DNA from: Sminthopsis crassicaudata
Taxonomy: Eukaryota
Assembly (NCBI RefSeq): GCF_048593235.1
Contig: NC_133622.1
Location: 236,933,198-236,997,197, forward strand
DNA: 64,000 nt
Reading direction: 5' to 3'
A program made the position numbers and the translations under genes. Under the pieces are notes generated by a model. That model ran no database searches. It was not told the origin of the DNA and saw only the letters and a list, made by a program, of their open reading frames with translations. Positions 1 through 40,716 of this stretch are shown in pieces. Positions within the stretch are counted from its first letter, which is position 1. Each line of letters starts with the position of its first letter.

Positions 1-384
1 GACAGACAATGGCTAGGATCATATTCTTAACTATAAAAAGATGAAATCATACTGTTTGATTTAAATAAGCTATTTTTATTTGAATATAAAAAGAGAAAAT
101 CTGTGCTATTCCAGTAGGGTTAGAATTAGAAACTAACCTGCTCTATGTTACCTCCCTGTGAAGATCAGCCCAGATAGCATAGGAAGTATTTTGTAAACCT
201 TAAAGTATACTATAAATGCTATTTATCACGATTGCTTAGATTATTCATGTATCTTGGCCCATCTGACCTCCTTTCTTCTACTCAGCTGTGGCTCTTTGCC
301 CACTGAGATTCCTGTAGAAGTAAAAGATACAAAAGGACAATGGTTGGATGCCACTGTTTCTATAGATCCAAAGTGGTACAATGA

Positions 385-600
385 TTAAATGCTAGGCCTG
401 GAGTCTGGAAGATTTAAATTCAAATCTATTTTCAGACATGCATTAGTTATGTGACTCTGGCCAAGTCATTTAACTAATATTTTCTTCAGTATCCTTGTGT
501 AAAATGGAAATATGACCCAAGACCAAATGATAGTGATAAAGTGCTTAGAATAGTGTTTGGCACATAATTGACATTCAACAAATCCTTCCACCTTTCCCTT
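385..600 (+). mobile_element. CORE-SINE (MIR/Ther-1-like) with L2-type tail
   Basis: Core-like 'gtgactctggccaagtcatttaac' and tail 'aaagtgcttagaatagtgtttggcacata'; copies at ~29655-29870 and ~59035-59255. Confidence 0.7.
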
Positions 601-1069
601 CTTCCAACATTATGGTATTTGAGTTTCTTTAAAATCAGAAAAACAATGCTGCCTTATATTATCACATAATCTCCAAATGCATTGAAACAAAAGAACATTT
701 TCAAACATAGATGTGAAGAATCTTTTCCCCCTAAATTATTATATGAAACAGCCAAGTCAGTCCAACTCAGTGCATTTCCCCATAACCTCTGGCTATGGAA
801 AATTGAACACAATTTAGGCAAATAAGTTGAAGCTCCTCTCTCTGAACAGTGAGGTGTGCTGAGCTGCATAGGATCAATCTTTGTAGTGCCCAAGGAAATA
901 GAGGAAGAAGTGAAATAAAACATAGCAAAACCCCTAAATACTAGCTTTTATTCCATCAGGGGCGTGATCTGTCTTGACATCTAAAGTCAGGTTTTTGTTT
1001 TCAACAATGAGGAAATTGATACTCAGAATATGAAAGTGAGAGAAAAACCTTCCATCCTATGTATCCTAC

Positions 1070-1259
1070 CTCAAAAGAAGTGCTCTTCCCATTATATCAG
1101 AAAACTTGTATTGCCATTGCCTGGACAGAGAGGGAGTAGATCGATAACAAGGGACTATGCTTTACCCTCTTTATAAAGAAAAAAATTTGCAGAATATGAG
1201 AAGAAAAGTGATTTTTTTTTCCCTGTCTACCACCAAATAGCTGGGAACATGGAAGAGAA
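1070..1259 (-). other. Putative non-coding exon 2 of a V1R-C-type gene whose CDS lies left of the window
   Basis: Minus-strand acceptor cctctttctctcttttcccctgtacag|ttc and donor tttgag|gtagga; the acceptor is conserved in all five copies of this block. Confidence 0.55.
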
Positions 1260-1727
1260 CTGTACAGGGGAAAAGAGAGAAAGAGGACATATGGAGAAGG
1301 TATCAATAAAGATTCAAGGACCCTGAATCTACAGTGAACTAGTAAGATATGTGTTAAACTGACATTGAGAGGATTCTGGGTAAGAAAGAGGTTAGCGCCA
1401 TTACCGGAGATGAACTCTCTCTCTCTTGTCTTTCTCCTCCCCAAATATATAGTATATGCTGCCTCCTATCATTTGGCAAGAGTGATAAAGAGTGGGCTGA
1501 AGATTAAGTAAAGGAATGGAGAACAAAAGCTTACAATATTTGTTCTCAAACCCAAGCCAGAATAGCCTAGAATAGTCAAAATGTCCTTCCTGTGTCTCCC
1601 TCCCAAAAATCATTATTCCTAGTCATCTTTTCTTCTTCATTGCAGAACTGAGAGCCTGTTCCCTGGCTCCTGGAAGGGATTCTTGCCTATCCCTGTGTCT
1701 GAGGCTAAGGCCTTCCATATTACTCAC

Positions 1728-2150
1728 CAGACTGTTCTCTGCTGTGGCCTGGAATAGAATTGCAGAAGTCTGTGCATGTCTGTGTGTGTGTATGTGACTG
1801 TGTATATGTATGTGTGGGGCATATCTGGGGCTGAAGTTATAGGGAGAGCAGATTCTGAGCTCATTTCCCCTCAGAGCTATAATTATGATGTTATGTGCTG
1901 CAAGAGGAACACTTGACAGAATAGGGAACTTGAGGGGTGTCTTAATTAGGAAGAGAATTTTACCTCATGTGAAAATTTTTGTCAACAATTTTTATTTGAT
2001 TAATGAGGCTCTCCAAAGAAATATTTGTGAAGTAAAGAAAAAGAGATTTTCCTCTACCTGTTGAGAAAAAAAATTTTCATTTTTTTTCATGGTCATTACA
2101 AGGGTGTGCTGCTAAATGTCAAACAGTGATTTCAGAAAAATGTACTCTGG
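1728..2150 (-). promoter_or_regulatory. Putative V1R exon 1 / promoter block (copy X1)
   Basis: Minus-strand donor ctg|gtgagt at 1727; block homologous to 15178-15600, 30997-31410, 44426-44860 and 60383-60790; TAATTA, TGACAG and TGATTAAT motifs. Confidence 0.6.
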
Positions 2151-2392
2151 GAAAGCTGAAAAGGGTTTATAAGGAAAGCTAGTGATTTAAGTTTGAGACA
2201 AAATGACTTTGAGATGTTTCCATCCAAAGTGTACACAATTTGAAATGTACAATGGATCGTTTTTGATTCAGATCTAAACTACTCCTGAGAAGTATTTTTG
2301 TTTATTTAGTATCAAGTCATTTGATAATTATAGGTTTATAATGTGATTTGAATTCTATTTACTTTTCTTTCCTAATACTTTTTATCAATATC

Positions 2393-2680
2393 AAGAAGAA
2401 AAACCCCAACCATAAAATCTTATTCTAGAAATGGGAGACTGGGATTCATCTTCAGAGAACTACAGTGAAGTAAAAAAGGCCTCTTGTATTCCAAAGTATA
2501 ACATTAAATGGCAACCCATCCAGAAAGAATTTATACAAGAATTCAAAAAAGACTTTAAAAATCAAATGAGACTAATTGAGAAAAACTTACAAAAAATAAA
2601 AGCAAGAAAACCATTTAGGAAAAATAAGAAAATTTTGAAAAAAAGTCAATCAAGTAGAAAAGGAGATGCAGAAACTACAT
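2393..2680 (+). mobile_element. L1 ORF1 5' fragment (decayed)
   Basis: Frameshifted translation KKNPTIKSY...KEFIQEFKKDFKNQMR...KVNQ(V/L)EKEMQKL resembles the marsupial L1 ORF1 N-terminus/coiled coil (recall-based). Confidence 0.75.
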
Positions 2681-2684
2681 TATA

Positions 2685-4238
2685 ATGAATACATTACAAT
2701 GCATATTCCCTTGGTTTTTCAAGGAAGAAGAAATAGAGGCAGATAATTGGAAACTTGTAGGAGATCAACTATGTGAATACTACAATGATAAAGGCCCTGA
2801 TTCAATTTCTAAGGAACCACTCTATATGTACAACATAATACAATTGGCCTTAAAGAATCCCACAAGTTCCAGAAAAAAGAAAAGTTTTAAGAACAGCCAG
2901 ATGAGGAAGTGTGAGGAAAAAGAGGAACACAAAGGAGAGATTAATGGCAATGTCACCAGAGGGCATGAGGACTTAAGTGAACTTGAAGGGCATGGTGATT
3001 CTTATTCTCACAGCCCAGCTTCAACTCTACCTACACCAGAGCAGCTCCTTGAGCCTCCCCCATCAACTTCACCTTCCTGAGTGGAGGGAGGAGGAGGAGT
3101 GGGAAGGGCAGTGATATCATTAGCACCTATCCCACCCCAGCAATCACCCCCTCCTATGACTAGATTGCAAAAGGCATTACTTAAAGCCATAGAAGAAGCT
3201 GATATGAGCACAGCTGATATGAGAATAGAAATGTATCCTGTGATTCAACAGCTTAACTCTTCAGGTCAAGAATGTAGAAGATACAATCCTTTTGATTTAG
3301 AAATCATCAATGACTGAAAAAGGCTTGCATTCTTTATGGGGCTACATCATCTTATGTTAAGATGTTATTATAGAATTTGGCTTATGAAATTTTAACTCCT
3401 AGTGACTGGAAATCTATAGCAAGGACATGCTTAGAACCTGAACAAAACTTGTTGTGGCTCTCTGAATATAGTGAGCTCTGTAGGATACAAGTCCAATGAA
3501 AAAGTCAAAGTGGAGTTAATGCTCCGGTCATATGTGACCAACTAACTGGTGTAGGTTCTTATGTAGATACTTCAGTAAACATTAATTACCCCATAGCCAA
3601 ATATGAGCAAATAACTTTTGCTGCTATCAAAGCATGGGGTTTTATCCCAGGTCAACAGGACAAAGGAGAGGCCTTCATGAAACTAGCACAAGGGCCAAGT
3701 GAACCCTTTGCTGATTTTGTGGGATGTTTACAGATAGCTTTCATGCAAACTATTGGTGAAAATGCAGCAACAGAAATTATGATAAGGTAACTTGCTAAAG
3801 AAATTGCTAATGAGGTTTATAAAAGAATTATTCTAGGACTACACAAGGATGCTCCTTTAGAGGAGATCATAAGATGCTGTGCCAGAGTGGGTAAAGATAC
3901 CTTTTATAGCCAGGCTATGATGCAGACTTCCCAAGATCCGAACATGGAAATACAGGGTCCCTTTTGGCAAGGGACTTCCAGAGAGACTCATCAATGTTTT
4001 CAAGTAGGGAAAGTAAAGTAGGGCATCTGAAAACTTAATGTTGGCATAGAGACAAGTGAGAAAACAGGGTGGGAGAACAAGACCCAATACCCCATGTCCA
4101 AAATGTAACAGAAGCTTTTATTGGGCATCAGAAAGTAGACTGATACAGGGAAATGGGATGAGGGGCCCAGCCCTGGGGCCCAAAATAAAAAAAAATACTT
4201 GGGGAATGATGGCAGCCAATGCTACACCCAGCCTTTAG
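2685..4238 (+). pseudogene. gag: ERV gag, disrupted
   Basis: MA-like PWF..EIEADNWKLVGDQLCEYY; CA PFDLEII; MHR QGPSEPFADFV; NC CPKCNRSFYWASE; stops and frameshifts. Confidence 0.93.
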
Positions 4239-4369
4239 AATAGAATAGAAAAATAGCCTTTAGAAGTTCAATACGCAGACATGACAAATCAGGCAGGAAG
4301 CAATCTGATGGGAGAAAGGGATTGCACAATCAATCAGCCAGGAAGCAACCTGATGGGAGAAAAGGATTA

Positions 4370-4950
4370 CAATTAGGGGGAATAGAATTGTGTACAGCTG
4401 GGACAACTGAGATAGCCCCTGGGGAGGTGAAATCTGTTCCTCTCCAGCCTATGGATCCCTTGCCTCTAGGCCCAGTAGGCTTGACCATTTCACTTCCTGA
4501 TAGTACTTACAAAACAGTGTTCATCCATACACTGATGTGTAGGAGAAATAGTAGCATCAGGTTTACAGATAGACTCCTAATAGGCAATCTGGTTATCGTT
4601 GGCCAGATTCTGACTCCAGCAAAATCCACGAATATACTAGACAGCAGCTGTGACAGCTGACTGTCCTATGGTCACTTACTATATAAATGGCATACCATTA
4701 GAAGGATTGGTAGGCACAGGTGCAGATCATACAGTCATTAGAGGTGTCAACTGGCCCAGTCACTGGCCAAAGATTAAAGCAGACACCTTTATGTCTGATG
4801 TAGGAGGAACAATAGCAGCTGAAGTTAGTGCTCTCCTTTGAGATGGACATTTGAAGTCAAAACAGGGGTTTTACTCCTTTTATAGTTGAAAAAAATCCCC
4901 ATCAATCTGTTGGGGAAGAGACATTTTACAACAATTAGGATTATAAATGA
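4370..4950 (+). pseudogene. pro: ERV pro (degenerate dUTPase + aspartic protease), disrupted
   Basis: PGEVKSVP..PLPLGPVGL dUTPase-like segment; INGIPLEGLV(G)TGADHTVI protease motif with DTG>GTG; IPINLLG. Confidence 0.88.
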
Positions 4951-4964
4951 GTACTTCCGTTTTT

Positions 4965-7520
4965 TAGTTAGGGCTGTTGTTGAAGGCCTGCCAACACCAT
5001 TCATCCAATGGAAAACTGATACACCAGTGTGGATAGATCAGTGGGCCTTAGCTAGCAATAAAATTCAGGCCTTATTAGATAAAGTGCAAGAGCAACTTGA
5101 CCAAGGACACTTACAACTTTCTCTAAGTCCTTGGAATTACCCTGTATTTGTTGTCAGAAAGAAACTGGAAAATGGAGGATGTTGACTGATTTAAGAAAGG
5201 TAAATGAACAGATGGAAACTATGTGAACTCTTTAGCCTGGACTTCCATCTCCTACTCAATTGCTCAGAGAATGGCCTCTTTGGGTTATTAAGGATTGTTT
5301 CTATTCTATTCCTCTAGATAAGGAGGATATGAAAAGATTTGCCTTTTCAGTGCCCAGCGTTAACTTAGCTGAGTCTTATAAAAGATATGAATGGACAGTT
5401 TTGCTACAGGGAATGAAAAACAGCTCTACTATGTGCCAAATGTATGTTGCTGCTGCTCTTACTCCAGTAAGAAAAGCATTTCCAAAAGTAATGTTATTAC
5501 ATTACATGGGTGATATATTGGGATGTGCACCTGAGGAACAAATGTTAGAAGCATGTCTGCAAAAGACCATGGAAATACTAAGGAATCATAAATTGCACAT
5601 AGCTCCAGAAAAAATTCAATGGTATGCTCCTTTTCAATATTTAGGATATGAAGTATACCCTAAGGTGTTTATAATACAAAAACTCTCCTTAAGAACAGAG
5701 AAGCTAAATACCTTAAATAACTTTCAGAAATTGATAGGAGATATCCAATGGATGTGTCCAGTGTTAGGCTTGACTACCTATCAATTGCAATCATTATATG
5801 ACATTTTAAGGGGAGACACTGCTTTAAACTTACCATGCCAGCTTAGAAAAGAAGCTCAAGAGTCTTTGAGAGAAGTTGAATTGGCTTTATCCAATTTGTT
5901 GAAAGAGTCATTCAGAAACCCTTGGTAATATCAGTTTTTGCTACACAAGAGGCACCCACAGCAGTCCTTCATCAAGGAGACATTGTGATAGAGTGGGTGA
6001 ACCTCCCAGCACAACCAGAACAAAGCCTTACTCCTTACCCAGTGCTTGTGGCTAGAATTTTATTAAAGGCCATTAAGTGAGCAGTACAATTATCTGGGAT
6101 AAGACCTGACAAGATATACACCTTTTATACTAATGCACAAGTTAATGTGTGCTGTGAAACCATCCTAAAGTGGCAAATTTTATTAGCCATGGCTCCAAAT
6201 TTTACACAGGGGTCTCCATTAAAGATAACCAGACTGTTACATAATTGGCAATGGATTCTTGAAGAAGAGGTTTCTAAAGTTCCTCTTAAAGGACTAACTA
6301 TCTTTACAGATGCATCCAAACATAATATTTGCACTGTATACTCTCGTTACTTAACTATAAAGAGAGTAGTCAGAACTCCTTTTCAGTCCACTCAGCAGAA
6401 TGAATTGTATGCAATCATTCTAGCTTTTACTTATTACCCAGGATACTTAAATACAATGACTGATTCCGTCTATTCAGTAGGTGTGATACAAAGAATTGCC
6501 ACAGCCCAAATAAAATTTGTAGCCTCTAATATATATCAGCTCTTTAAGGAAATTCAAGAGCAAGTGAGAAAGCATCCAGGTAAGACTTATATTTTGCATG
6601 TCCACTCTCATAGTAGACTTCCAGCTCCTATTTTTGATGGTAACTCAAAGGCAGATAGCCTTCTAATCATGTTGGCCAATACTCCTTTATTTCAAGCAGT
6701 CCAAGAATCTCATTCTAAATATCCTGAGGCTGGTCAAGCTTTACGTTTACAATTTGGAATAACAAGAGAAGAAGCTAGGAGCATAGTAAAAGCCTGTATA
6801 GCTTGCCTTCCTTTCCATGCTTCTACACTCCCTCCAGGGAAGAACCCTCGTGATTTGAGACCCAGTGAAATTTGGCAAATGGACGTGAACCACTGTAAAT
6901 CTTTTGGTCACCTGTGTTTTATCCATATTGTGGTAGACACCTTTTTAGGATTCACATTTGCAATGCCAGCAGCAAAAAGACAGCTCAAGTGGTCACTGAA
7001 TTCCTTATACAAGCATTTGCAATTATGGGGTACCACAAACAATAAAAACAGACAATGGACCTGCATATACTTCCACACAATTTGCACAATTTTGTGCACA
7101 GTATAAGATTTTACATACCATTGGCATCCCCTTTAATTCTCAAGGACAGGCAACAGTAGAGAGGAGAAACAGAGACATTAAGAATCTCCTCCAAAAAGAA
7201 AAGAAAAGGGGAGCAGTAACCCTAGAGAACTTCTAAATCTAGCTCTTCATACTTTTAACTTCTTGATTTTTGACAATGATGCACTGGCTTTGGTGGACAG
7301 ATTTTATAACCCACCAGAAGGGCAGTGTCCAGTGTGTGAGCAGCAGCACTGTCTTTAGATAAGCATCAGGTGATGTAGGGAGACCCAGAAAGTGGTGAAT
7401 GGAAGGGACCAGAGAGGTTAACTGTTTGGGGGAGAGGGTTTGCTTGTATCTCTACAGATGGAGAAGGAATTAGATGGGTGCCAATGAGCCGCATTATCCT
7501 TGTCCATCATAGAGAGTTGG
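4965..7520 (+). pseudogene. pol: ERV pol (RT-RNaseH-IN), disrupted
   Basis: PVWIDQW, SPWNYPVFVV, KDCFYSIPL, QGMKNS, HYMGDIL (YMDD), FTDAS, WQMDV, IVVDTF; several frameshifts and stops. Confidence 0.95.
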
Positions 7521-7610
7521 AGCAGACCCTTTGAAATGAAGGAGAAGACCCAAGAAACATTGGGTGGTTCCATTACTGACTATGACCCCTACTGAAGGAG
7601 CCTGACAGTT

Positions 7611-7832
7611 ATGGTATTTGACTCATGGACATCAAAAATTGTTGGACTTCAAAACCCTCAGCAATCATTGGATTTTCTGAGTCATGATAAAACTGTTGCC
7701 GGACTTAAAAATCTGCAGGAACCATTGTATTTCATGGTACGTGAAGCAATGGACAAGAGATTGATTTTGGACTATTTCTTGGCTGCTGAAGGAGGCATAT
7801 GTGCGACTGTTGTTTACATACCCTCCTTCTAG
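7611..7832 (+). pseudogene. env: env TM remnant, open 73-aa ORF with immunosuppressive-domain-like motif
   Basis: MDKRLILDYFLAAEGGICA motif after two heptad-like repeats; SU, CX6CC completion and membrane anchor absent. Confidence 0.7.
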
Positions 7833-7957
7833 GACTTCTGAAAATCTTTTACAACACCATGTTGATTCATAGCGTTTCTTATATCACTACTTGCATGTAT
7901 AATTCATGTTTGTTACACCACATTGAGCCTGCACCAGCTGTGAGGAGAGTCATCACT

Positions 7958-8352
7958 TGTAATGTGCTGTTGTCTCCAGAAACTGCCAATCGCTCTCTGG
8001 TCTAGAGGAGAGACTTCTTCCTCCAGAGAACCGCCTCAACTCTGGCCCAGAAAAGACTTTTTCTCCTCCAGAGAGCCGCTCCAACTCTGACCTAGAGCAG
8101 AGACTCTTCTCTATCTCTCTAGTGCCGCCCTGTTTTATCCTCCCAGAGAATGGGCGTGGGATAACACAAGGGCTTCTGGGAAAAATTACTTCAACCAATG
8201 AACTTGGTCCTCTCAAGCATCTCCTCTCCAGGAGTTCACAGAAGCAAAACTCCCAGTAAAGGCCAGAACTAGAGAATTGTCAAGTACCAACTTAGCACTT
8301 AGTAAGAACTTATCATCTCATTATCTCATTAGTACTTAGTAAGAACCTAACA
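7958..8352 (-). mobile_element. Solo LTR nested in the ERV 3' untranslated region
   Basis: TGT...ACA ends; 6-bp TSD ATCACT at 7952-7957 and 8353-8358; on the minus strand GGATAAAA TATA-like box, a CCAAT box and internal ~41-bp tandem repeats. Confidence 0.9.
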
Positions 8353-8569
8353 ATCACTAATATCCTGTGTGTTATTGCTATGTGCTTGTGTAATACCTCC
8401 CATGCTGATGGGTTTGTGCATACCTGTTTCTCGTAAGACCCTTCAGCCCAGAAACCCGCTAACAATATCTGGCTTGACTCCCCAATTCCCTTTCCTGTTT
8501 TTCATCTCTCTGCCTGAGAAGTCAGGGAAGGCGTGACCACCATGTTCTAAAGCTAAAGAAAGCAGGAGA

Positions 8570-8914
8570 TATAAAGGGCTGAAACTCTTAAAAGATGTGC
8601 TAGAATCAGACACAGAGCCCTTAAGGGTAATTACCTACTGGACAATAACGCTATTAGCATATGTTTGGAATTTCTCTTCTCAGTTAGTTCTGGCTCAATA
8701 TTTGGGGTTAACAGAATTGTAGGTAAGGATTAGAGGGTGGGGTGAGAGAGGCTAGAGAATTTTACTTTGTAGAGGACCAGGAAAAGACAGGTTGGTGGGG
8801 AGCTTGTGGCAATTTAGCTGTTGCCTTCACTTCTTCCCCTAAAGACCAAGGACTTTTACTTATCCTGATTCTGGCTGTTCCTAAGACCTCCAGGGAGCTA
8901 GCCCGGGCTTTACA
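8570..8914 (+). mobile_element. ERV 3' LTR (345 bp)
   Basis: Purine tract aaagaaagcaggaga (8555-8569), then T(A/G)TAAAG...CTTTACA terminal inverted repeat. Confidence 0.85.
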
Positions 8915-9140
8915 TATAATATCTTCTACTATTGTATATGATTCCATGAAATGAAAATTTATTGTTACATATTTTGAATCCCCTTTGTTATTCTGCTAGG
9001 CACATGAAATTGTTGTGTGTTTTTTCTTTTTTTCTCGATGTCTATATTTTTATTATTTTATATTTAACTTTAAATCAATATTTAAAAAGGAACAGGAGGA
9101 AATATCTTCTCAGGTTTCTGCTTTGTGAATAGTCTTGGTG
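8915..9140 (+). mobile_element. Old L1 3' UTR-like fragment (ERV insertion target)
   Basis: 'aatgaaaatttattgttacatattttgaa' homologous to the uninterrupted copy at ~19200-19510. Confidence 0.6.
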
Positions 9141-9149
9141 ATTATTTCA

Positions 9150-9905
9150 TGTAACTTTTGGCAAGTGTTTAGATACTATTCTTTTTATTTACAAATTTAT
9201 GGTCATTTTACATTCCTGGTTCTATTTACTTTACTTTCCATAATTTCACCTATGTTTTCCCATTTTTCTGCACATTTATTATATTCATGACTTTTTAAAA
9301 TTGTAGTAATCTGCATAATATTTAATATTCCATTTATTTTTAATATGTATTCCATATTTACTTCATTACATTTACATGCCATGCTTTTTAAAAGACTTTT
9401 TCAAGTAGATGGGAACTGACTTTGTTTTCATTCTTTGCTTCAATCAAAAATGTTGTTATAAATATTCTGATGTATGTCGGGTTTTTTTTTTTTGAACATT
9501 GGTCTCATTGGGGTATATGCCTAAGAGTAGGGTATCCAATTTTATATGGGAAGGGGTAGTATTATTTTTCATTTGTTCCTTTCTTTATATTCTTTCACTT
9601 TATGAAGGAGAATTGGAGTTATAGGATTATTGTTATATGATTATTGCTTTTATGTTTTTATATGTTTTATGACAAACTCGATTTTTTGTTTTGGTAAGAA
9701 TTTTACCTGTTTCCATTGTTGGGAATCATCAGTTCTCCTATTATCCTGCTGTATTATGATGATGTGAGTCTTTACATTCAGATTACTTATCCATTTTGAG
9801 CTAATTTTGTGATATGGTTTTAGTCCCTAATTTATGCTCATTTTTTCCTTTTTTCCCTAGCATTTCTCAAGTAGAGAGTTATTCCTGAGAAGAGTTCTTT
9901 AAACA
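9150..9905 (-). mobile_element. Old L1 ORF2 3' fragment overlapping the V1R-A stop codon / 3' UTR
   Basis: Minus strand 'ccatatcacaaaattagctcaaaatggataagtaatctgaatgtaaag' resembles L1 ORF2; homologues at ~19560-20162 and ~22560-23145. Confidence 0.65.
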
Positions 9906-10799
9906 TAAGAGAGAAGGAAAAGACCTGGGCTTCTGAGTGTCAGTGGTGATCAGCACAATAGGACTGATTATTGGATAAAACATGGAAAGTGCAACTGTGA
10001 AATCTAATGCCCAGTGTCTGATTTCTGTTGCAGAAGCTATATAAATAACAAAAGGAGAACTGACTGAATTAAAGCAAAGAAATGTGACCACCAGCATCAG
10101 GACCGCTTTGGTGGCTCTAGTCTCAGGGGATGCTCTGAGGGAGGAGTTGATGTTGTGAATGTGTTGGACCCTCTTGATGTGTCTGTGCAAGATAAATACC
10201 ATATATCCACTTGAGGCAACCATGAGACCCACAAACAGAGCATGAACAATTGACTCATAAGTTAAAATTTTTATAATACTCATGGCTTGTAAATGAAAAG
10301 AAATATGTCCAATCCTCCATCTTTCATTACTTCTGTTTCTTGGACTACTATAATTCATAGGTGCAGCAATATCAAGAAGAAGATTGAAAATCCAGTTGAG
10401 AATACAGCAGGAAGGAATACACTTTTGGGTTCTAGTTTTAACTTGTGCCCACTTAAGGGTGCTGGGGCTGATAGTGATGGCCTGGACGACACTCAGGAGG
10501 CAGGTGCTGCAAAGAGAAAGGCCCCGAGTCACTCTCATGACATAAAGTAAGATTTTACCCATTGTTTCATCTATGAAAGATGTCCATTCCCAATTGGTTA
10601 TAATTGTAGAGAAGGCCCTGCAAAGAATCATTAAGACATGGGCAAAGGCCATATTTATGATGATCAGGCTGATGAGTCTTTTCCTGTGGGCAGTGATGAA
10701 CTTGTGAATGTGTAGATAAAGAAGGGACATGTTCCCCAGAACTCCAAAGAAAAACATGGTCAAGTAGAAAATGGCCAAACTATCTTTTTGAGAGCTCAT
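9879..10799 (-). CDS. Vomeronasal type-1 receptor, intact (V1R-A, 306 aa)
   Basis: Single-exon 7TM ORF with V1R motifs GN (TM1), RVTRGLSLCSTCLLSVVQAITISP, LHRHIKRVQHIH, ETRATKAVL, YPIISP; acceptor tttctccccag| 47 nt upstream (10846). Family-level call only. Confidence 0.96.
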   Translation of the reverse strand: MSSQKDSLAIFYLTMFFFGVLGNMSLLYLHIHKFITAHRKRLISLIIINMAFAHVLMILCRAFSTIITNWEWTSFIDETMGKILLYVMRVTRGLSLCSTCLLSVVQAITISPSTLKWAQVKTRTQKCIPSCCILNWIFNLLLDIAAPMNYSSPRNRSNERWRIGHISFHLQAMSIIKILTYESIVHALFVGLMVASSGYMVFILHRHIKRVQHIHNINSSLRASPETRATKAVLMLVVTFLCFNSVSSPFVIYIASATEIRHWALDFTVALSMFYPIISPIVLITTDTQKPRSFPSLLCLKNSSQE

Positions 10800-11413
10800 T
10801 CCTTGAGAGATTCCTTGGAGAACTTTGCTGTCAGCTCCAAAGGGACCTGGGGAGAAACATAGGAGCGTGTGACTTTTCCAATGTGAGGAATTCCCAAATA
10901 TACAACCTACTCAGCTTCTCTTTGAAGAGTGGTAAACCTTCCCAGATAATAGTGCCATTCTAGTGTTCATGAGACATATATTCAACACATCAATTCACAA
11001 ATATTTATTATTCATTATCTAAATATCTTAGAAATAAAACACTTCCCATTTTTTCCAAACCACATTTCTCCTCTTACGACACAATTATCACCTTTTTTAT
11101 AACTAGGATTTTGGACAGACGCGGGATATTTAGCTGTCACAGGTAAGCTTTTGTCTTATGTTTCCAGGGTCCATGTTTCCAAGGTACTGCTTTTCCTTTG
11201 CTTCATGTGCTCCCCTTTGTGAAACCTGACTTTTTTTGGTTCTTTCATTAGAATGTAAGATCTAAAAGGGCAGAGACTTTCTTGGATACTTTTACCCTTA
11301 TTACTATTACTTAGCACACTTCCTGGAATATATATGGTAAAGCTATTTTGATGGTATTTTTTGTAACTAGAATTTGATGAGAAAGAGTAAACTCTGCAGG
11401 TGTCAGCTCTTAC

Positions 11414-11471
11414 TTTTAAAGGATTAGTGACCAGAAATGTTGGTGAATTGTTCAAATTCAGGTCCTTAAAG

Positions 11472-11521
<50 letters not shown>

Positions 11522-11567
11522 GTTTGTATGTGTGTGTGTGTGTGTGTGTGTGTTCTAGATGGATACC
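11414..11567 (-). other. Putative non-coding exon 3 of V1R-A, containing a CA repeat
   Basis: Donor aaa|gtaaga; acceptor is a weak AAG; positionally homologous to 24682-24834. Confidence 0.4.
11474..11552. repeat. (GT)n microsatellite, interrupted
   Basis: Direct reading; copy at 40718-40800. Confidence 0.97.
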
Positions 11568-12536
11568 CTTAGGTAGTAATTACAGATCCCTTTGAAGAGT
11601 GAGTTGTGCAAGATTACTTAAATGTCTAACTATATCTGCCCTCTAAACTTGGGGATTCCACAATACTTTCCACATGTCATATGAAAATACACATTTTCTA
11701 AGGTAAATTATAAGTAGTGCAAGATATTAAAAATATGTAGCGATAATGAAAGGAGTTAGCACTGAGGTATTTGATAATCCTCATTTTTATCTGAACTGGA
11801 TAAAAGAATTTAACATTTTCATACAACCTTTTTCACACACACATACACACAGAGCATGGTTAGGAATATATTAAACTTAACAGTTTAAACCTACAAAATC
11901 AATAGTTTTTGGGGAAAGGAGATGGAGGCACAAATAGGAGGGCAGATGTATGAGCAAGTTTTGTAAATGAAATAGTTTGTTTTAGGAAGCAGGGGACTCT
12001 TACAGATGGATTGAAAGAAAGAAAAGAAAGAGTGAAACAATGTGATCAGTGTTGATAGGGCAGTGAAGCAGAAAAAAATTGTATCATTCAGAATTTGTTG
12101 TTCGTCTAAGTATTCTTTAACTCCTTTGTAAAAAGGAAAATAAGAGAAAAAAACAACAACAACTAGGAAGACAATACAGCAGGATTACAATAATTTGTAG
12201 GAAAATAATTGGGACATACCACCCACTGAATAGTAGAGCACAATAGAATATACTGCAAAGCTGATTTCCAAAATAAGTTACTTGAAAAAATTACTTTTGT
12301 TACATAAAGATTCATGTGCAGATAAAATCCATCATACTTCAAAAAAACTTTAAAAAGCATGCTTTTAGAGAAAGTAATGGCAAAAAATAAACATGATAGA
12401 AGGAGATAAGCATGGAAAAACATGCTCAATGATGACAATGAAAAATCTTTTACAAACATGTCATATTAAATATATTTGATATGCATTATATATATTCTTA
12501 CCTGTATAAACATTTTATATGGACACACAATCAGTA

Positions 12537-12570
12537 CATATATATATGTGTATGTATATATATGTACACT

Positions 12571-12605
<35 letters not shown>

Positions 12606-12612
12606 TTATATA
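12537..12612. repeat. (TA)n/(CA)n microsatellite
   Basis: Direct reading; copy ~41783-41850 has fewer CA and more TA. Confidence 0.9.
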
Positions 12613-13849
12613 ATACATTACAAATATGTGTAAGTAGATGTTTTTGCTTTTTAGTTTTGGAAAGGGGATGCCATCTGTTAGACAGAGGATGCTCTGGGTA
12701 TCAGGTCACTCTAAGTCTAAGCCCCAGTTATGAGACTCTGGCTAAGGCAGTTATTTTATTCTAGGAAACCCCAAGATGTTGGGGAATGACTGATTTGAAT
12801 CAGGAGAGTGTCTTTTTACACTCAGAGCTTCTTGATTCTATGAAACCACAGGTTTAGGTGAACAAAACTAGGAATTCAACATGCTTTATTTCTGTCAACC
12901 AAATGACTAGAAGTGTGGTCTATATGCTCTGAATGGGTGGGACTTACTCCAGCTGCCTTGTGTTTGTTACACTCCTGTTATCAAAGTATGAATTTTTTGG
13001 GGGAAGACTTCTATATGTTCCATTTTTCCAGATGACTTCCCTAGAGGAAATGCAATGGTTAGAATGTCAGACTTGGTTTCTGGAAGCCCCAAGTTGAAGT
13101 GTAGCTTCTGACACTTAGTTGTGACCCTCAGAACATCAGCTTTCCTAGCTTTCACGATTTATAAAACGAGTACAATAATAGCACTATGCTTTGAAGACCA
13201 AATGAGAACATCTATAAAGTACTTAGCACAGTGTCTGGCACAAACTTGACATTGCATAAATACTTCCTACTCTGCTTTTCTTCCTTGAAAATTTGTGCTA
13301 TTCAAGTGGGTTGAGAATTGGAAAAAATATCCTGTCCTGCATTATCTACCTGTAAGGTTGCTGTGAGGATCAAGTGATATATCCTCTGTAAATCTTAAAG
13401 TGCTCTATAAATGTTGTTTATGATTATTCCTCTGATTATTGATGTATCCTATGCCATCTGACCTTGTTTCTTGCTCTCAACTTTAGCTCTTTGCATACTG
13501 AGATTGCTGAAATAGGCAATGACACAAAAGAAAAATGAACACCCATTACTAAGGCAAGATTAGTTACCACTGCATATTTGGGAAATTAATTGGTACAGAA
13601 CTACGGGAGTAGTTACAGAACTACGGGAGTAGTTCTGGAGGTAGGAAGACAAATTTAAATCTATCCTCAGACAAAGAATAGCTTTTTAACCTTGCAAAAT
13701 TAACTTAAATAAGATCTTCAGTTTTTTCATGCGTAAAATGGGAATATGTTATAAAATATGCTATATATCAAATGAGATGATAGTGAAAACATAGTAATAA
13801 ATTCTTTCCCATGGTGCTTGGCATATAGTTGACATTCCCTAAGTCCTCC

Positions 13850-14020
13850 TCGCCTTTCTTTTTCTTACTTTTCCCTTCCTTCCTTCCCATTCCCTCTCTC
13901 CCTTCCTCCCTTCCTCCCTTCCTCCCTTCCTTTCTCCCTTCCTCCCTCCCTCTCTCCCTTCCTCTTTCCCTTCCTTCCTCCATTTCTTCCCTCCTTGTCT
14001 CATTTCCTTCTTTCTTTCCT
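13850..14020. repeat. (CCTT/CCCT)n pyrimidine tract
   Basis: Direct reading; longer variant at ~43066-43258. Confidence 0.95.
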
Positions 14021-14578
14021 TTCTCCTTTGAAAGATTGTATTATTCAAGTGTCTTTAATAATAGAAAAACAATGGTATCCTATGTAATTAGTTAATCCTC
14101 AAACATATTGAAACGAAAGAGAACAAATCCTTGTTTTGTTCTTCAAACAAAGATGTGATTATTCTATTATTTTTTCACAAGTTTTTTTTTATCTATAAGC
14201 TTTCTAAATTTTCATATGAACTTAGCCAACTTAGTCTAATTCAGTGCACACTCTTATAACGTCTGTCTATGAAAGATTAATGAGACCTTAGGGAAATAAA
14301 ATGATCATTTTGATACATAGTTTTCTGCCCCTAGAAGCTCCCTCCTCTGAATAGGGAGAATTTTGGAGATGTGCTGAGTTGCATAGGATCAATCTTTGTG
14401 CTGCCCAAGGAAATGGAGGAAGAAGTGAAATAAAACATAGCACAACCCCCAAACCCTAACCTTTGCTCCATCAGGGGACAGATCTGTACTTGGCACCTAA
14501 GTCAGTTTTTTTTAACAATGAGGAAATTAAGGCTCAGGATATAAAAGTGAATGAAAAACTCTAGGTAGTGCTACTTAC

Positions 14579-14714
14579 TGCCACTGCCTGAACAGACAAG
14601 GAGGCAGATAGAGACATTGATTTTTCCTCTTTATCAAGAGAAATTTGTAGAATATAAGAAGAAAGACGTTTGTTTTTCTGAATATTATTAAATGGCTTGG
14701 AGCCAGAGAGAGAA
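14579..14714 (-). other. Putative non-coding exon 2 of V1R-A
   Basis: Acceptor tttttctctctggcccttccag|ttc; donor gca|gtaagt (differs from the donor in the other copies). Confidence 0.5.
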
Positions 14715-15177
14715 CTGGAAGGGCCAGAGAGAAAAAAAAAACTTATAGAGGAGGTATCAATGCAGTTTCTAGGCAATCTACAGCAAACTCTTGAGATATG
14801 CCTGTTACGCTGACACTGAGAGGATGCTGTGAAAGAAACAAGGTACCCCATTGCCAGACATGAGCTCTCCATGTCTTTTCTCTGCCCTTCCAAAATATAA
14901 AGTATATGCTGTATCCTATTGTGTGAAGATAGTGATGAAGAATGAGCTGAAGAGTAACTAAAGGAATGGAAAATAGAAGGTGGCAGTCTTGTTTCCAAAA
15001 CCCAAGCCAGAATAGCCTAGAATAGTCAAAATGTCCTTCCTTTATCCCCCCCCCCCAAATCATTATTCCTAATCATCTTTTCTTCCTCATTGCAGAACTG
15101 AGAGAGCCTGTTCCCTGGCTCCTGGAAGGGATTCTTACCTATCCCTGTGTGAGGCTAAGGCTTTCCATATCACTCAC

Positions 15178-15600
15178 CAGACTGTTCTCTGCTGCCGGGG
15201 CCTGGGGTAGAATTGCAGAAGTCTGTGCATGTATGTGAGTATGTGTATATGTATGTGTGGGGTATATCTGGGGCTGGAGTTATAGGGAGAGCAGAGTCTA
15301 AGCTCATTTCCCCTAAGATCTATAATTATGATGTCATGTGCTGCAAGAGGAACACTTGACAGAAGAGGGAACTTGAGGGGTGTCTGAATTAGGAACAGAA
15401 TTTTACCTCATGTGAAAATTATTGTCAACAATTTTTATTGATTAATGAGAATCTCCAAAGGAATATTTGTGAGTAACCAAAAAGAGATTTTCCTCTGCCT
15501 GTTAAGAGGAGAAGTAAAAGTTTAATTTTTTCTCATGGTCATTGCAAGGATTTGCTGCTAAATGTCTTTCAAACAGTGATCTCAGAAAAATGTACCCTGG
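15178..15600 (-). promoter_or_regulatory. Putative V1R-A exon 1 / promoter block (X2)
   Basis: Donor ctg|gtgagt at 15177, 4.4 kb upstream of the ATG; ~94-95% identical by eye to the V1R-C block at 30997-31400. Confidence 0.62.
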
Positions 15601-15643
15601 GCTCATTTTAACATTTAATCTGAATCTTCACCCTTTATCATTT

Positions 15644-16722
15644 AAAAAAATAGTTTTTATTTACCAGATATTTGCATGGGTAATTTTATAATATTGACAA
15701 TTGCCAAACCTTTTGTTCTAATTTTCCTCCTCCTTGCCCCCTCCCCCCCCCGAGATGGCAAGTTGACCAATACACGTTAAATATGTGCAAGTATAATTTA
15801 AATACAATATATGTATACATGTCCAAACAGTTATTTTGCTGTACAAAAAGAATCAGACTTTGAAATAGTGTACAATTAGCCTGTGAAGGAAATCCAAAAT
15901 GCAGGAGGACAAAAATAGAGGGATTAGAAATTCTATGTTGTAGTCCATAGTCATCTCCTAGGGTTCTTTTCCTGGGTGTAGCTGGTTCAATTCATTACTT
16001 CTCTATTGGAACTGATTTGGTTTATCTTATTGTCGAAAATGGCCACATCCATCAGAATTGATCATCATATAGTATTGTTGTTGAAGTATACAAAGATCTC
16101 CTGGTCCTGCTCATTTCACTCAACATCAGTTCCTGTAAGTCTCTCCAGTCCTTCCTGAAATCATCCTGCTGGTCATTTCTTATACAACAATAATATTTCA
16201 TAACATTCATATACCACAATTTATTCAGCCATTCTCCAATTGATGGACATCCACTCAGTTTCCAGTTTCTGGCCACTACAAAGAGGGTTGTCACAAACAT
16301 TCTTGCACATACAGGTCCCTTTCCCTTCTTTAACATCTCTTTGGGATATAAGGCCAGTAGTAACACTGCTGTGTCAAAGGGTATGCACAGTTTGACAACT
16401 TTTTTGAGCATAGTTCCAAATTGCTCTCCAGAATGGCTGGATGTATTTACAATTCCACCAACAATGTATCAGTGTCCCTGTTTTCCCACATCCCCTCCAA
16501 CATTGCACATTATCTTTCCCTGTCATTCTAGCCAATCTGACAGGTGTGTAGAGTTGTCTTAATTTACATTTCTCTGATTAATAATGACTTGGAGCATCTT
16601 TTCATATGACTAGAAATAGTTTCAATTTCTTCATTTGAGAAAATTGTTCATATCCTTTGAGCATTTATCAATTGGAGAATGGTTTGATTTCTTATAAATT
16701 AGAGTCAATTTTCTATATATTT
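15644..16722 (-). mobile_element. 5'-truncated L1 (ORF2 C-terminus + 3' UTR) with 14-bp TSD
   Basis: ORF 16052-16411 matches the L1 ORF2 C-terminus; TSD accctttatcattt at 15630-15643 and 16723-16736. Confidence 0.95.
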
Positions 16723-16759
16723 ACCCTTTATCATTTTCCTAAGTCTTCTTGCCCTTCCA

Positions 16760-16960
16760 TCATACCCAACTCTTTGTGACTCTGTGGATCATACTGTCCA
16801 TGTGATTTTCTTTGCAAAAGAGATGGAGGATTGCCTTTTTCTTCTCTAGTGAATTAAGGCAAACACAAGTTATGTGACTCACACAATTAAGTCATAGGGC
16901 AGATTTGTTTTTTTGGCTTCCTGGCCCAGAATTCTATCTACTGAAACACATGTCTTGTCT
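16760..16960 (-). mobile_element. Mar1-like CORE-SINE (RTE-type tail), decayed
   Basis: 'caactctttgtgactctgtgg...ttttctttgcaaaagagatggaggattgcc...ttctctag' followed by core-like sequence; copy ~46020-46210. Confidence 0.6.
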
Positions 16961-17062
16961 AAATGTAGACAAAATAACAAAATGAAAACTCAGTGTTTTT
17001 CAGAATTTGCCAATTTCTGAGATGTGAACAATTGCCTTGAAAGATTAAGAATTAGCTGTTCT

Positions 17063-18266
17063 TAGAGATCATTATTGATCATAAAATAGAAGATTTTGAT
17101 TACATCAAACTAAAAAGTTTCTGTACAAACAATACTTAATGCAAACAAGATTAGAAGGGAAGTAACAAATTGGGAAAATATTTTTACAGTTAAAGGTTCT
17201 GATAAAGGTCTCATTTCCAAAATATATAGAGAACTGACCCTAATTTATAAGAAATCAAACCATTCTCCAATTGCTAAATGGTCAAAGGATATGAACAGAC
17301 AATTCTCAGATGATAAAATTGAAATTATATCCACTCATATGAAAGTGTTCCAAATCACTACTGATTAGAGAAATGCAAATTAAGACAACTCTAAGATACC
17401 ACTACACACCTGTCATATTGGCTAAGATGACAGGAACAAATAGTGATGAATGTTGGAGGGGATGTGGGAAAACTGGGACACTGATGCATTGTTGGTGGAG
17501 CTGTGAAAGTATCCGGCCATTCTGGAGAGCAATTTGGAACTATGCCCAAAGAGTTATCAAACTGTGTATACCCTTTGATCCAGCAGTGCTACTATTGGGC
17601 CTATATCCCAAAGAAATACTGAGGAGGGGAAAGGGACCTGTATGTGCCAAAATGTTTGTGGCAACTCTTTTTGTAGTGGCTAGAAATTGGAAGATGAATG
17701 GTTGTCCATCAATTGGAGAATAGTTGGGTAAATTATGGTATATGAAGGTTATGGAATATTATTGCTCTGTAAGAAATGACCAGGAGGAATACAGAGAGGC
17801 CTGGAGAGACTTACATCAACTGATACTGAGTGAAATGAACAGAACCAGAAGATCACTATACACTTCAACAACAATACTGTATGAAGATGTATACTGATGG
17901 AAGTGGATATTTTCAACATAAAGAAGATCCAACTCACTTCCAGCTGATCAATGATGGACAGAAACAACTACACCCAGAGAAGGAACACTGGGAAGTGAAT
18001 GTAAAATATTAGCACTACTGTCTATCTACCCAGGTTACTTATACCTTTGGAATCCAATACTTAACTTGCAACAAGAAAATTGGATTTACACACATATATT
18101 GTATCTAGGTTATACTGTAACACATATAAAATGTATGGGATTGCCTGTAATCTAGGGGAGGCAGTAGAGGGAGAGAGGGGAAAATTTGGAAAAATGTATA
18201 CAAGGGATAATGTTATAAAAAATTACTCATGCATATATACTGTCAAAAAATTTATAATTATAAAAA
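17063..18266 (+). mobile_element. 5'-truncated L1 (different 3' UTR subfamily) with 16-bp TSD
   Basis: ORF 17373-17723 [13 protein letters not shown]...CWRGCGK; TSD aagaattagctgttct at 17047-17062 and 18267-18282; TT/AAGA target and A-tail. Confidence 0.96.
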
Positions 18267-19041
18267 AAGAATTAGCTGTTCTGAGCAAGTTTGAGCCAGC
18301 TGCAACAAACTTCTAAGAAAGAGGGAGACTGGGGTGCTTGTGATATGATGAATGGAGAGCCCTTTACTTGTATTTCTGGGCTCCTGGTGAGCTCTTCTGT
18401 ACTAATCACTGAATGTTGTTGATACAAGGGCCCATTGAGTTCCTTTGGAGTCCCATTTTGTGTATCTAAGTTGAATTCCCTTCTTATGGCTAAAAGATTG
18501 GGAATGATAACTTAAAATTCTCTCCTTGATAGTGTGTTGGATTGAAACAATGATGGGGATGGATTATGACCTGAATATGAATGTGTAACTTCCATATCAT
18601 GGAAGGTATCCTTCGTATCATGTATGCCCAGGGACGACTCCCCAGCCCTTGAATGCCATATACTATGAGGATTCAACCACGTAATGGCTCTTTGAGATGA
18701 CATGATTCCTCCATTCACAACATGGACAAAGCTCTCTTTATCTCCTTCTGCCTCCTTAGGCCCTCTTGTTTTGTTGAGATATCAGATGTGTATCCTGATG
18801 TCATCTCTGAAAGAATTCAGGCTCAGCCAGTCTCCAACTCAAGGAAAGGCATTGTATTGAGTTATAGACACTCAGTGGGCTGTCAAAGCTCCCTGAGGGA
18901 ATCAGTCCAGCCACTCAAGGCCAGAGTTTTTAGAGTGTAAATGATACTTATTAGATCATAAGACATATACATTTTGAGGTTTTAGCAGGAGTTTGCCATC
19001 TTGGAGAGGTCCTTAAGCCTTGCTGGAACTGTACCTGTGAG

Positions 19042-19042
<1 letters not shown>

Positions 19043-19074
<32 letters not shown>

Positions 19075-19138
19075 CATATATATATATGTATGCATGTAGG
19101 TATACATGTGTATATATAGATAATGTGTCTGAGTATGA

Positions 19139-19192
<54 letters not shown>
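19043..19192. repeat. (TA)n-rich microsatellite
   Basis: Direct reading; coincides with the N gap in unit B. Confidence 0.95.
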
Positions 19193-19197
<5 letters not shown>

Positions 19198-20162
19198 TAA
19201 ATCTATGGTGAAATGTAGTCTACTTGGGGTGGAGGTGGAACAGAGTAAAAAGAGAAAGAAGAATAAAGTAAAAATTGCACATTAGAGAACAAAAGAATAT
19301 CCTACAAGGAAGTAAAGAATTGATGCAATGTCATAAATACAATGTATTCTGTTATATATGCTTTCTTAAAATGAAAATTTATTGTTACATATTTTGAAAC
19401 TTCTCTGATATTCTGCTGGGCATATGACAATATTTTATTTTTTTCCTTTTTCTGTCTTTCTATATTTTGTTTTTTTATCTTATATTAATTTCCAATAAAT
19501 ATTGAAAAAAAGAAGCAGGGGAAATACCTTCTTAGATTTGTGTTTTGTGAATAATCTTGGTGATTATTATTTCACATAATTTTTTTCAATTGTTTGGATG
19601 CTATTCTTTTTACTTACAAAATTATGGTCATTTTGCATTCCTGGTTCTACTTTACTTTGCATAATTCCATCGGTATTTATTATATTCACGATTTTTATCT
19701 TTTAGTAATAGGTAGAATATTTAAATATTCCATTTATTTTGCTTAATATGTATTCCTTATTACTTCTTTACATTTATATGCCATACTTTTTGAAAGACCT
19801 TTTCAACTTGATAGGAATTGACTTTGTTTCCCTGAAATGTTGATATAAATATTTTGATGTATATCAGGCCTTTTTTTGAAAATTGATCTCACTGGGGTAT
19901 ATGCTTAAGAGTAGGGTATGCAACTTTATAGGGGAAGGAACAGTATTAATTTTTATTTGTCCCTTTGTTTCTATTCTTTCAGTTTATGGGAGGAGAAGTG
20001 GAGGAGTGCAATTATTGTTTTCATGATCTACTCTATTTTTTGTTTTGGTGAGAGTTCCTCCTCTGTCCATTGTTGTGACTTTTCCCTTTTCCCATTATAC
20101 TCCAATTTTTTATGACTTCTTCCATTCATGTTGCTTATACATTTTGAGCTCATTTTGAGATA

Positions 20163-20891
20163 GACAGAATTACAGCAGACAAATGTGAGCACCAGCCTCA
20201 GAATGGCTTTGGTGGATCTAGTCTCAGGGGAAGTTCTGAGGGTGGGCTTAATGCTGTGAATGTGTCTCTCATTGTGTCTGTGCAATATAAATACCATTTA
20301 GCCACTTGAGCCAACCATGAGACTCACAAACAGAGCATTAACAACTGACTGACAAATTAAAATTTTTATAATATTCATGGCTTGCAAGTCTAAAGAAATA
20401 TGTCCAATCCTCCACCTTTCATTACTTCTGTTTCTTGGGCTACTATAATTCATAGGTGCAGCAATATCAAGAAGAAGATTGAAAATCCAGCTGAGCATAC
20501 AGCAGGAAGGAATACACTTTTGGGTTCTAGTTTTAAGTTGTGCCCACTTAAGGCTGCTGGGGCTGATGGTGATGTCCTGGACGACACTCAGGAGGCAGCT
20601 GCAAAGAGAAAGGCCCCGGGTCACTCTTATGAGGTAATATACAATTTTACCCATTGTTTCATCTAGGAAAGATATCCATCCCCAAATGGTTATTATTGTA
20701 GGGATGCCTCTGAAAACAATCATTAAGACATGGGCAAAAGCCAAATTGATGATGATCAGGCTGATGAGGCTTTTTCTGTGAGCAGTGTTGAATTTATGAA
20801 CGTGCAGACAAAGAAGGGACATGTTGCCCAGAACTCCAAAGAAAAGCATGGTCAAGTACACAATGACCAAGCTGTCTTTATGAAAGCTCAT
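20163..20891 (-). pseudogene. V1R pseudogene (V1R-B)
   Basis: MSFHKDS... start at 20891; TAT>TAA stop at 20298-20300; in-frame codon deletions; ~250-bp deletion removing TM7/C-terminus (joins NSV to the 3' flank). Confidence 0.93.
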
Positions 20892-24681: not shown

Positions 24682-24760
24682 TCTGGTAGGCTAAGTCACC
24701 AGAAATATTGGAATACTGGGGGATTGTTTTCTTTTGATGCTGAAAATTCAAGTCCTTAAA

Positions 24761-24807
<47 letters not shown>

Positions 24808-40658: not shown

Positions 40659-40716
40659 TTTTAAAGGATTAGTGACCAGAAATGTTGGTGAATTGTTCAA
40701 ATTCAGGTCCTTAAAG

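Follow-up and report, generated by a model that had tools for sequence, protein, structure and literature searches.

No structural feature of the rhodopsin-like G-protein-coupled receptors (GPCRs) is more widely conserved than the disulfide that joins the top of the third transmembrane helix (TM3; cysteine C3.25) to the second extracellular loop (ECL2), and a locus of the marsupial Sminthopsis crassicaudata raises the question of what it means for a chemosensory receptor to lack both cysteines of this bond. The sequence under study, called the window hereafter, is a stretch of 64,000 nucleotides (nt) of contig NC_133622.1 (RefSeq assembly GCF_048593235.1, positions 236,933,198 to 236,997,197 of the forward strand), in which six type-1 vomeronasal receptor (V1R) sequences lie on the minus strand. 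An initial annotation, made from the letters alone, had suggested that they form a functional marsupial V1R subfamily with a coordinated loss of the cysteine pair and, possibly, a more open or lipid-accessible binding pocket. The present analysis favours, with a probability of about 0.7, an ancient and marsupial-specific clade of functional V1Rs that has given up the TM3-ECL2 tether and would position ECL2 non-covalently, in the manner of TAS2Rs.

Intact V1R genes lacking both disulfide cysteines

V1Rs are seven-helix GPCRs related to TAS2Rs. The six sequences of the window are distributed in threes over the two units of a tandem duplication (A, B and C in one unit, A', B' and C' in the other). 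They had initially been counted as six sequences, yet they are not independent, representing three paralogs in two duplication copies, with B and B' being pseudogenes. The other four are intact open reading frames (ORFs) of 306 or 309 amino acids (aa) matching the Pfam V1R model (PF03402) with E-values of 6e-59 to 1e-66. In particular, gene A reached 200.1 bits (E-value 5.9e-59) and gene C 224.4 bits (E-value 2.4e-66), the cut-off being 25 bits. Membership of the TAS2R family was rejected for both genes, as the TAS2R model (PF05296) scored far lower (46 bits for A and 35 bits for C) and the nearest homologs were V1Rs; the 7tm_1 match was likewise much weaker. Among the 120 nearest listed database relatives, every one named by its source was called a vomeronasal type-1 receptor. 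Furthermore, the AlphaFold2 (AF2) model of A showed seven long helices (residues 3-36, 41-70, 78-110, 115-148, 171-215, 225-256 and 262-287) with a predicted template modelling score (pTM) of 0.76, and all the 29 near-invariant V1R residues (for example G19, N23, Q106, H207, E226 and P280) were kept in C. A, A', C and C' are thus predicted to be functional type-1 vomeronasal receptors. In apical vomeronasal neurons, V1Rs are known to use Galpha-i2, PLC and TRPC2 for signalling, a property of the family that is assumed here for A and C. Expression data for dunnart V1Rs were not found in a full-text literature search covering mainly open-access text.

The conserved cysteines between TM2 and TM3 and between TM4 and TM5, a V1R-wide feature, were absent from A and C. 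When aligned with homologs using MAFFT, Gly81 and residue 166 (Ile in A, Val in C) fell in the cysteine columns of the motifs 'G-C-K' and 'G-Y-C-S', respectively. That typical V1Rs carry these two motifs, as the initial annotation had stated, was borne out by the alignments and by a 2025 review listing exactly both cysteines among a handful of V1R-wide conserved residues (PMC12294341). Misalignment was rejected as the cause, since three independent MAFFT alignments (120, 200 and 333 sequences) gave the same cysteine columns. Reading the minus strand returned the same Gly81 and Ile166 codons in A as the initial annotation, and the ORF translations contained the motifs (D/N)ETMGKI and (R/G)IGH(I/V/N)S that it had described. 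Thus, TM3 and ECL2 read IDETMGKI and RWRIGHIS in A, LNETMGKI and RWRIGHVS in C, and LDETMGKI and RWRIGHIS in pseudogene B. The Gly81 codon of A is one step from TGT.

The remaining cysteines of A (positions 60, 97, 100, 127, 131, 132, 242 and 299) and C (97, 100, 127, 132, 195, 198, 242 and 295) were all found inside predicted AF2 helices or in the C-terminal tail. Judged against these helices, A, A', C and C' had no cysteine in the N-terminus or in extracellular loops 1 to 3 (ECL1-3), in agreement with the claim that the intact receptors lack extracellular-loop cysteines, and a substitute cysteine pair in A or C was therefore rejected. Overall, the canonical cysteine pair is a conserved feature of V1Rs and not a requirement for homology.

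Loss of the cysteines as a pair

The state of the two columns was subsequently scored across V1Rs. Both cysteines were present in 45 of the 120 nearest database proteins and neither in 75, while no protein had only one of them. Outside these relatives the loss was rare: when 87 more V1Rs were scored, each full-length and representing one cluster at 50% identity, 77 had both cysteines. In the pooled set of 333 V1R cluster representatives, whose columns were anchored on a Cys-bearing reference, 213 had both, 107 had neither and 13 had one, figures that do not represent an unbiased frequency because two Cys-less queries were used to assemble the set; several of the 13 single-Cys representatives were truncated or misaligned sequences. 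The two disulfide cysteines are lost together, likely because selection acts against an extracellular cysteine left without its bonding partner. Moreover, half-way states were found in Petaurus (P0123, Cys/Ser, beside Ser/Lys and Ser/Ser sisters) and in mouse Vmn1r68 (Cys/Tyr), which hint that the ECL2 cysteine goes first.

An ancient marsupial clade under purifying selection

A quick IQ-TREE phylogeny of 124 proteins was constructed, with both cysteine columns kept in the tree alignment, which introduces a small bias. The genes of the window were placed in a core clade of 42 rows with a support of 100% in the Shimodaira-Hasegawa-like approximate likelihood ratio test (SH-aLRT). Intact members were found in 12 American and Australian marsupial species of the genera Sminthopsis, Sarcophilus, Antechinus, Macrotis, Vombatus, Phascolarctos, Trichosurus, Petaurus, Dromiciops, Gracilinanus and Monodelphis, while no placental or monotreme member appeared among the 124 tree proteins; the nearest placental and monotreme proteins were Cys-bearing and about 37% identical. 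Both didelphids and australidelphians were present in each of the two core sub-clades, from which it follows that the cysteine loss predates the marsupial crown group and that the last common ancestor of living marsupials already had two or more Cys-less genes. Within this clade, A and C arose by a dasyurid-specific duplication, with Sarcophilus orthologs existing for each. Their protein identity to the nearest counterparts was 71%, consistent with the divergence of about 30% initially reported.

The core clade was included in a wider marsupial superclade of 98 rows (support 96%), in which one or both canonical cysteines were missing in 74 rows. Cys-less and Cys-bearing groups were interleaved within it, so the free tree needs at least three changes. 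In the approximately unbiased (AU) test, a single Cys-less clade was not rejected (P = 0.544), the constrained tree being 1.85 log-likelihood units better, and the number of marsupial loss events may possibly lie anywhere between one and three.

Selection was estimated by pairwise Nei-Gojobori ratios of nonsynonymous to synonymous substitution rates (dN/dS), with Fisher P-values for a ratio below 1 and orthologs from Sarcophilus and Dromiciops only. The comparison of A with C gave 0.35 (P = 1.9e-9), and not a value near 1, which the initial annotation had associated with decay. Similar ratios were obtained for C and Dromiciops (0.35, P = 3.6e-9), followed by A and Dromiciops (0.45, P = 6.2e-6) and by C and its Sarcophilus ortholog (0.54, P = 0.036). 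Judging from these ratios, purifying selection has acted on the core clade from before American and Australian marsupials separated. The proposal of a functional marsupial subfamily would thereby be stronger than first claimed, with a clade of 42 rows in 12 species, a loss that predates the crown group and dN/dS well below 1. Between the copies of the duplication, C and C' differed by two nonsynonymous and four synonymous changes, numbers too small to interpret.

Conservation and predicted structure of ECL2

The loop that lost its cysteine showed several features specific to the core clade. Two ECL2 N-glycosylation sequons were present in 34/40 members, while other clades mostly had one; both had been described for the window's genes and were recovered (NYS at 149 and NRS at 155 in A, NIS and NSS at the same positions in C). 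The N149 sequon was specific to the core clade (33/40), and N155 was common to all marsupial clades. Moreover, the ECL2 segment was shorter by two to three residues (mean of 30.9 vs. 33), and the motif E-R-W-(R/K)-I-G-H-x-S-F was nearly invariant (W161 in 39/40, G164 and S167 in 40/40), as was the W-G-W of ECL1 (37/40, 36/40 and 38/40, respectively). The TM3 column was Gly81 in 36 of the 40 members, and the ECL2 cysteine column was occupied by Ser, Ile or Val, whereas Cys was found there throughout the comparison clades (20/20 and 12/12). The genes C and C' had an additional sequon, N77-E-T, at the boundary of ECL1 and TM3, two residues before Gly81 (codons 77-79 of C, 23812-23820, minus strand), where A reads D-E-T.

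Relaxed constraint on ECL2 was considered and rejected. ECL2 identity within the core clade (0.58, with 0.66 overall) was about that of the Cys-bearing marsupial clade (0.60, with 0.67 overall), and the loop was nearly unchanged between orthologs: A differed from its Sarcophilus counterpart there by one nonsynonymous and four synonymous changes, and C by no change at all. The two paralogs, in contrast, had diverged in this loop (dN/dS 0.75 for A against C).

The AF2 models of A and of P0060, a Cys-bearing Sminthopsis paralog, were built from the same alignment of 140 sequences. For A, the mean predicted local distance difference test score (pLDDT) was 77.7, and ECL2 had no strands and stayed below 50 over residues 152-170; for P0060, it was 89.6 with a pTM of 0.87, ECL2 reaching about 65 and forming a short hairpin. 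The models give a weak hint that ECL2 is less defined in A than in P0060.

Relocated cysteine pairs and independent losses

Extracellular cysteines were absent from 33 of the 42 core-clade members, and the other nine had one sporadic, scattered cysteine. The situation was different in two further groups of the same superclade (96%) in which both canonical cysteines are also replaced. One of them, the 'IR' clade (24 tree rows), had Ile at the TM3 column and Arg or Lys at the ECL2 column, together with two new cysteines in all 23 members scored, one in ECL1 (reference position 74) and the other in ECL2, five residues before the site of the lost cysteine. The other, comprising P0043, P0044 and P0045 (Trichosurus, Vombatus and Monodelphis), had Val or Ile at the TM3 column, Ser at the ECL2 column, and a new pair formed by Cys78, three residues before the old TM3 site (LDCxEVK), and Cys152 in ECL2 (VTCPRN). 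Unlike the core clade, each group has its own fully conserved new pair, so that both look like carriers of a relocated disulfide and not of an absent one. A similar n-8 cysteine shift has been described in the T2Rs of the coelacanth Latimeria (PMC4132921). The members of the 'IR' clade were P0056, P0068, P0074-P0078, P0080, P0082-P0086, P0088-P0093, P0096, P0098, P0100 and P0121. In addition, the Cys-bearing marsupial clade (e.g. P0060, P0051 and P0057) had extra cysteines at reference positions 9 (N-terminus or top of TM1) and 70 (ECL1) in 100% and 95% of its 20 members, respectively; these were absent elsewhere and may form a second disulfide.

Outside marsupials, a search with vole P0205 as the query found a muroid lineage of 31 clusters with Tyr at both cysteine columns, including mouse Vmn1r230 (V1re8), rat Vom1r9 and Vom1r13, and proteins of voles, hamsters, deer mice and gerbils (P0205, P0291-P0320 and P0408). 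Like the core clade, it represents an independent double loss of the same cysteines within V1Rs, kept across many species. It differs in its replacements, with each Tyr being one nucleotide step from Cys, in its single ECL2 sequon, and in nesting within the placental V1re beside the Cys-bearing V1re9 and the Cys/Tyr Vmn1r68; the marsupial clade is also far older and larger. Given this second double loss, the loss of the cysteine pair in V1Rs is rare but recurrent. The paired loss proposed for the marsupial clade therefore stood, but it is not unique, considering the muroid Tyr/Tyr lineage, the Cys/Tyr state of Vmn1r68 and the sister clades with a relocated pair. Of the examples found, none approaches the marsupial clade in size or age.

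Comparison with other receptors

Compared with canonical V1Rs (e.g. Sminthopsis P0060 and placental V1R4-like proteins), A and C share the single-exon structure of about 300 aa, seven predicted helices, the N155 sequon, Pfam V1R scores of 200-225 bits and 27 to 29 of the 29 near-invariant residues; they differ by the replacement of both cysteines, an ECL2 shorter by two to three residues, the second sequon and the ERW(R/K)IGHxSF motif. No solved V1R structure was found in the Protein Data Bank (PDB). By profile, the nearest solved proteins were TAS2R14 and TAS2R46 (E-value 1.5e-10), followed by peptide receptors. Foldseek likewise placed TAS2R4 and TAS2R14 first, with CB1, opioid, NPY and CCK receptors following at similar scores.

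TAS2Rs (TAS2R14, TAS2R46 and TAS2R4) resemble the core clade in lacking the C3.25-ECL2 disulfide and in having a conserved ECL2 N-glycosylation sequon, although in TAS2R14 (8rql_R), which has Phe at the TM3 column, the ECL2 column is still Cys (NKTCSSD). In a 2026 cryo-electron microscopy study of TAS2R4, the flexibility of ECL2 was attributed to the missing bond and the conserved ECL2 sequon (PMC13172528). As both features are present in the core clade, its members can be read as V1Rs that converged on a TAS2R-type loop design, a functional resemblance only: they score higher as V1Rs than as TAS2Rs (200 vs. 46 bits) and are nested inside the V1Rs on the tree, which argues for convergent loss and not for membership. 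The analogy, together with the AF2 confidence, weakly suggests a more mobile ECL2 in the core clade.

The class A receptors for S1P, LPA, cannabinoids and melanocortins also lack the TM3-ECL2 disulfide, the C3.25-ECL2 bond being absent from them as from the core clade, but they have no specific sequence relationship with it. CB1 and CB2 were absent from the profile-search matches to solved structures. Their Foldseek matches (E-values of about 5e-6 to 3e-5, template modelling scores of 0.68-0.73) were level with those of opioid, NPY, CCK and somatostatin receptors, and the lipid-accessible pocket initially suggested found no support, the fold matches to CB1 and CB2 being no better than those to peptide receptors.

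Weighing of the explanations

In the favoured reading, the covalent tether was given up through Cys to Gly at TM3 and Cys to Ile, Val or Ser in ECL2, while the loop is shorter by two to three residues, has gained its second sequon and keeps ERW(R/K)IGHxSF opposite the W-G-W of ECL1. ECL2 would retain a defined role over the ligand pocket, held by non-covalent packing and glycans instead of a disulfide, as in TAS2Rs with their more mobile ECL2, and such an untethered arrangement could plausibly alter ligand entry and tuning. Several observations weigh against this. The conserved relocated pairs of two sister clades suggest that a tether is usually favoured; low AF2 confidence does not measure flexibility; and the strongly conserved ECL2 motif fits a rigid loop with unchanged function equally. 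Moreover, gene A may be less constrained than C, since it keeps 27 of the 29 near-invariant residues (G62 and I233 differ), its dN/dS with the Sarcophilus ortholog was 0.63 (P = 0.055), and four nonsynonymous and no synonymous differences separate it from A', numbers that are again too small to interpret. A rigid loop is what a compensated neutral loss would entail, with ERW(R/K)IGHxSF packed against W-G-W and the small Gly81, and with pocket, ligand access and tuning essentially unchanged. The near-invariance of both motifs in the core clade, the conservation of ECL2 at the level of the Cys-bearing clades and its near-identity between orthologs would all suit this explanation. However, AF2 was much less confident on the ECL2 of A than on that of the Cys-bearing paralog from the same alignment, the same two features accompany a flexible ECL2 in TAS2Rs, and the sister clades keep a conserved cysteine pair at new positions, so that the tether does not appear simply dispensable. 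A neutral loss is thus considered rather unlikely, while still deserving some weight.

The ORFs could otherwise be relics of a recent duplication in a high-turnover family, the missing disulfide marking a loss of function. B and B', which are pseudogenes with the same Gly/Ile state in the same array, would fit such a decay, as would the weak constraint between A and its Sarcophilus ortholog and the four replacements against no silent change between A and A'. In contrast, intact orthologs are spread over 12 marsupial species in a distribution older than the crown group, the deep pairs have dN/dS of 0.35-0.45 (P < 1e-5), C has every near-invariant V1R residue, and the clade-specific ECL2 motif is conserved; this conservation largely refutes decay, which seems untenable for the clade and very improbable for the genes at hand. 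Even less probable is a moved disulfide, in which another extracellular cysteine pair of A and C takes over. It has precedents in the neighbouring clades (Cys74 with the ECL2 cysteine in 23/23 'IR' members, Cys78 with Cys152 in P0043-45) and in the n-8 shift of the Latimeria T2Rs (PMC4132921), but A, A', C and C' have no cysteine in the N-terminus or ECL1-3 to form such a pair, and the core clade offers either none (33/42) or a single non-conserved one (the other nine members).

Implications for V1R evolution and annotation

Marsupial V1Rs may be viewed as a natural series in which the bond is canonical, has apparently moved twice, and has been missing from the largest clade since before the crown marsupials arose. 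If ECL2 were truly untethered and doubly glycosylated in that clade, this would be a second independent origin of a TAS2R-type 'open lid', a proposal that is speculative and, on balance, doubtful. Such a lid, if real, could allow a broader or bulkier range of semiochemicals to be recognized by the marsupial vomeronasal system. Few V1Rs have been deorphanised. Exchanging the cysteine state between close paralogs, in both directions, would also become a direct way to test whether the most conserved disulfide of GPCRs is dispensable. The Cys-less clade, the sisters that moved the bond, the paralogs that keep the cysteines and mouse Vmn1r230 in a genetic model together make up a comparative system for the role of the bond in the folding, trafficking and ligand access of chemosensory GPCRs, for the reasons why the cysteines are lost as a pair, and for whether a TAS2R-like loop arose more than once.

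Annotation is affected as well: a pipeline or motif filter that made the cysteine pair a condition would wrongly discard many of the sampled marsupial V1Rs (74 of the 98 superclade rows). The core-clade proteins are already public as "vomeronasal type-1 receptor-like", and opossum members have been named in V1R surveys. A published description of the cysteine loss in V1Rs was not found in the full-text literature, which was mainly open-access, with subscription journals largely uncovered. The loss of the TM3-ECL2 bond is known in other GPCR families, and its loss in V1Rs is therefore not a new kind of change.

Layout of the window

The features of the window are collected in Table 1. A self-BLAST of the window revealed a segmental duplication in tandem, each unit being about 29.3 kb long; two units are complete and a third starts at 58922. 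The complete units were 96.9% identical between 273-14560 and 29538-43774, 97.4% between 14575-19119 and 43834-48366, and 98.8% between 19213-32000 and 48564-61380, with numerous indels between them, while the start of the third unit matched at 92-98% (273-5459 vs. 58922-64000). Such divergence, together with the indels, is better explained by real copies than by an artefact of the assembly.

Table 1. Coordinates of the features found in the window
Feature	Position	Strand	Basis or remarks
Tandem segmental duplication, two units	273..58921	.	Self-BLAST
V1R gene A	9879..10799 (stop codon included)	-	Intact single-exon ORF, 306 aa
Codon 81 of A, GGT (Gly), TM3-top Cys column (C3.25 equivalent)	10557..10559	-	Sequence read and alignment column
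Codon 166 of A, ATT (Ile), ECL2 Cys column	10302..10304	-	Sequence read and alignment column
ECL2 segment of A with sequons N149-Y-S and N155-R-S	10329..10355	-	Sequence
ECL2 motif of A, E159-R-W-R-I-G-H-I-S-F168	10296..10325	-	Core-clade conservation
V1R B	20298..20891	-	Pseudogene, Gly/Ile state as in A
V1R gene C	23119..24048	-	Intact ORF, 309 aa, Gly81/Val166
V1R A', duplicate of A	39125..40045	-	Intact; 4 aa differences (R41K, C60F, A145D, I252M)
V1R B', duplicate of pseudogene B	49648..50241	-	ECL2 reads GIGHNS
V1R C', duplicate of C	52468..53397	-	Intact; 2 aa differences
Endogenous-retrovirus pol fragments (degenerate), one in each unit	5260-7106, 34500-36346	+	ORF domain matches

In both pseudogenes, an in-frame stop replaces the residue corresponding to Tyr199 of A, one codon of TM3 is deleted (LSLCS-CLL), the third intracellular loop (ICL3) has lost a short stretch, and the 3' end has given way to unrelated sequence; the match of B to the Pfam V1R model was partial (profile positions 9-195 of 292). 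A run of 197 Ns (48367-48563) was located immediately 3' of B'. Finally, the retroviral pol ORFs matched the domains RVT_1, RVT_thumb, RNase_H and Integrase_Zn, together with a weak match to rve.

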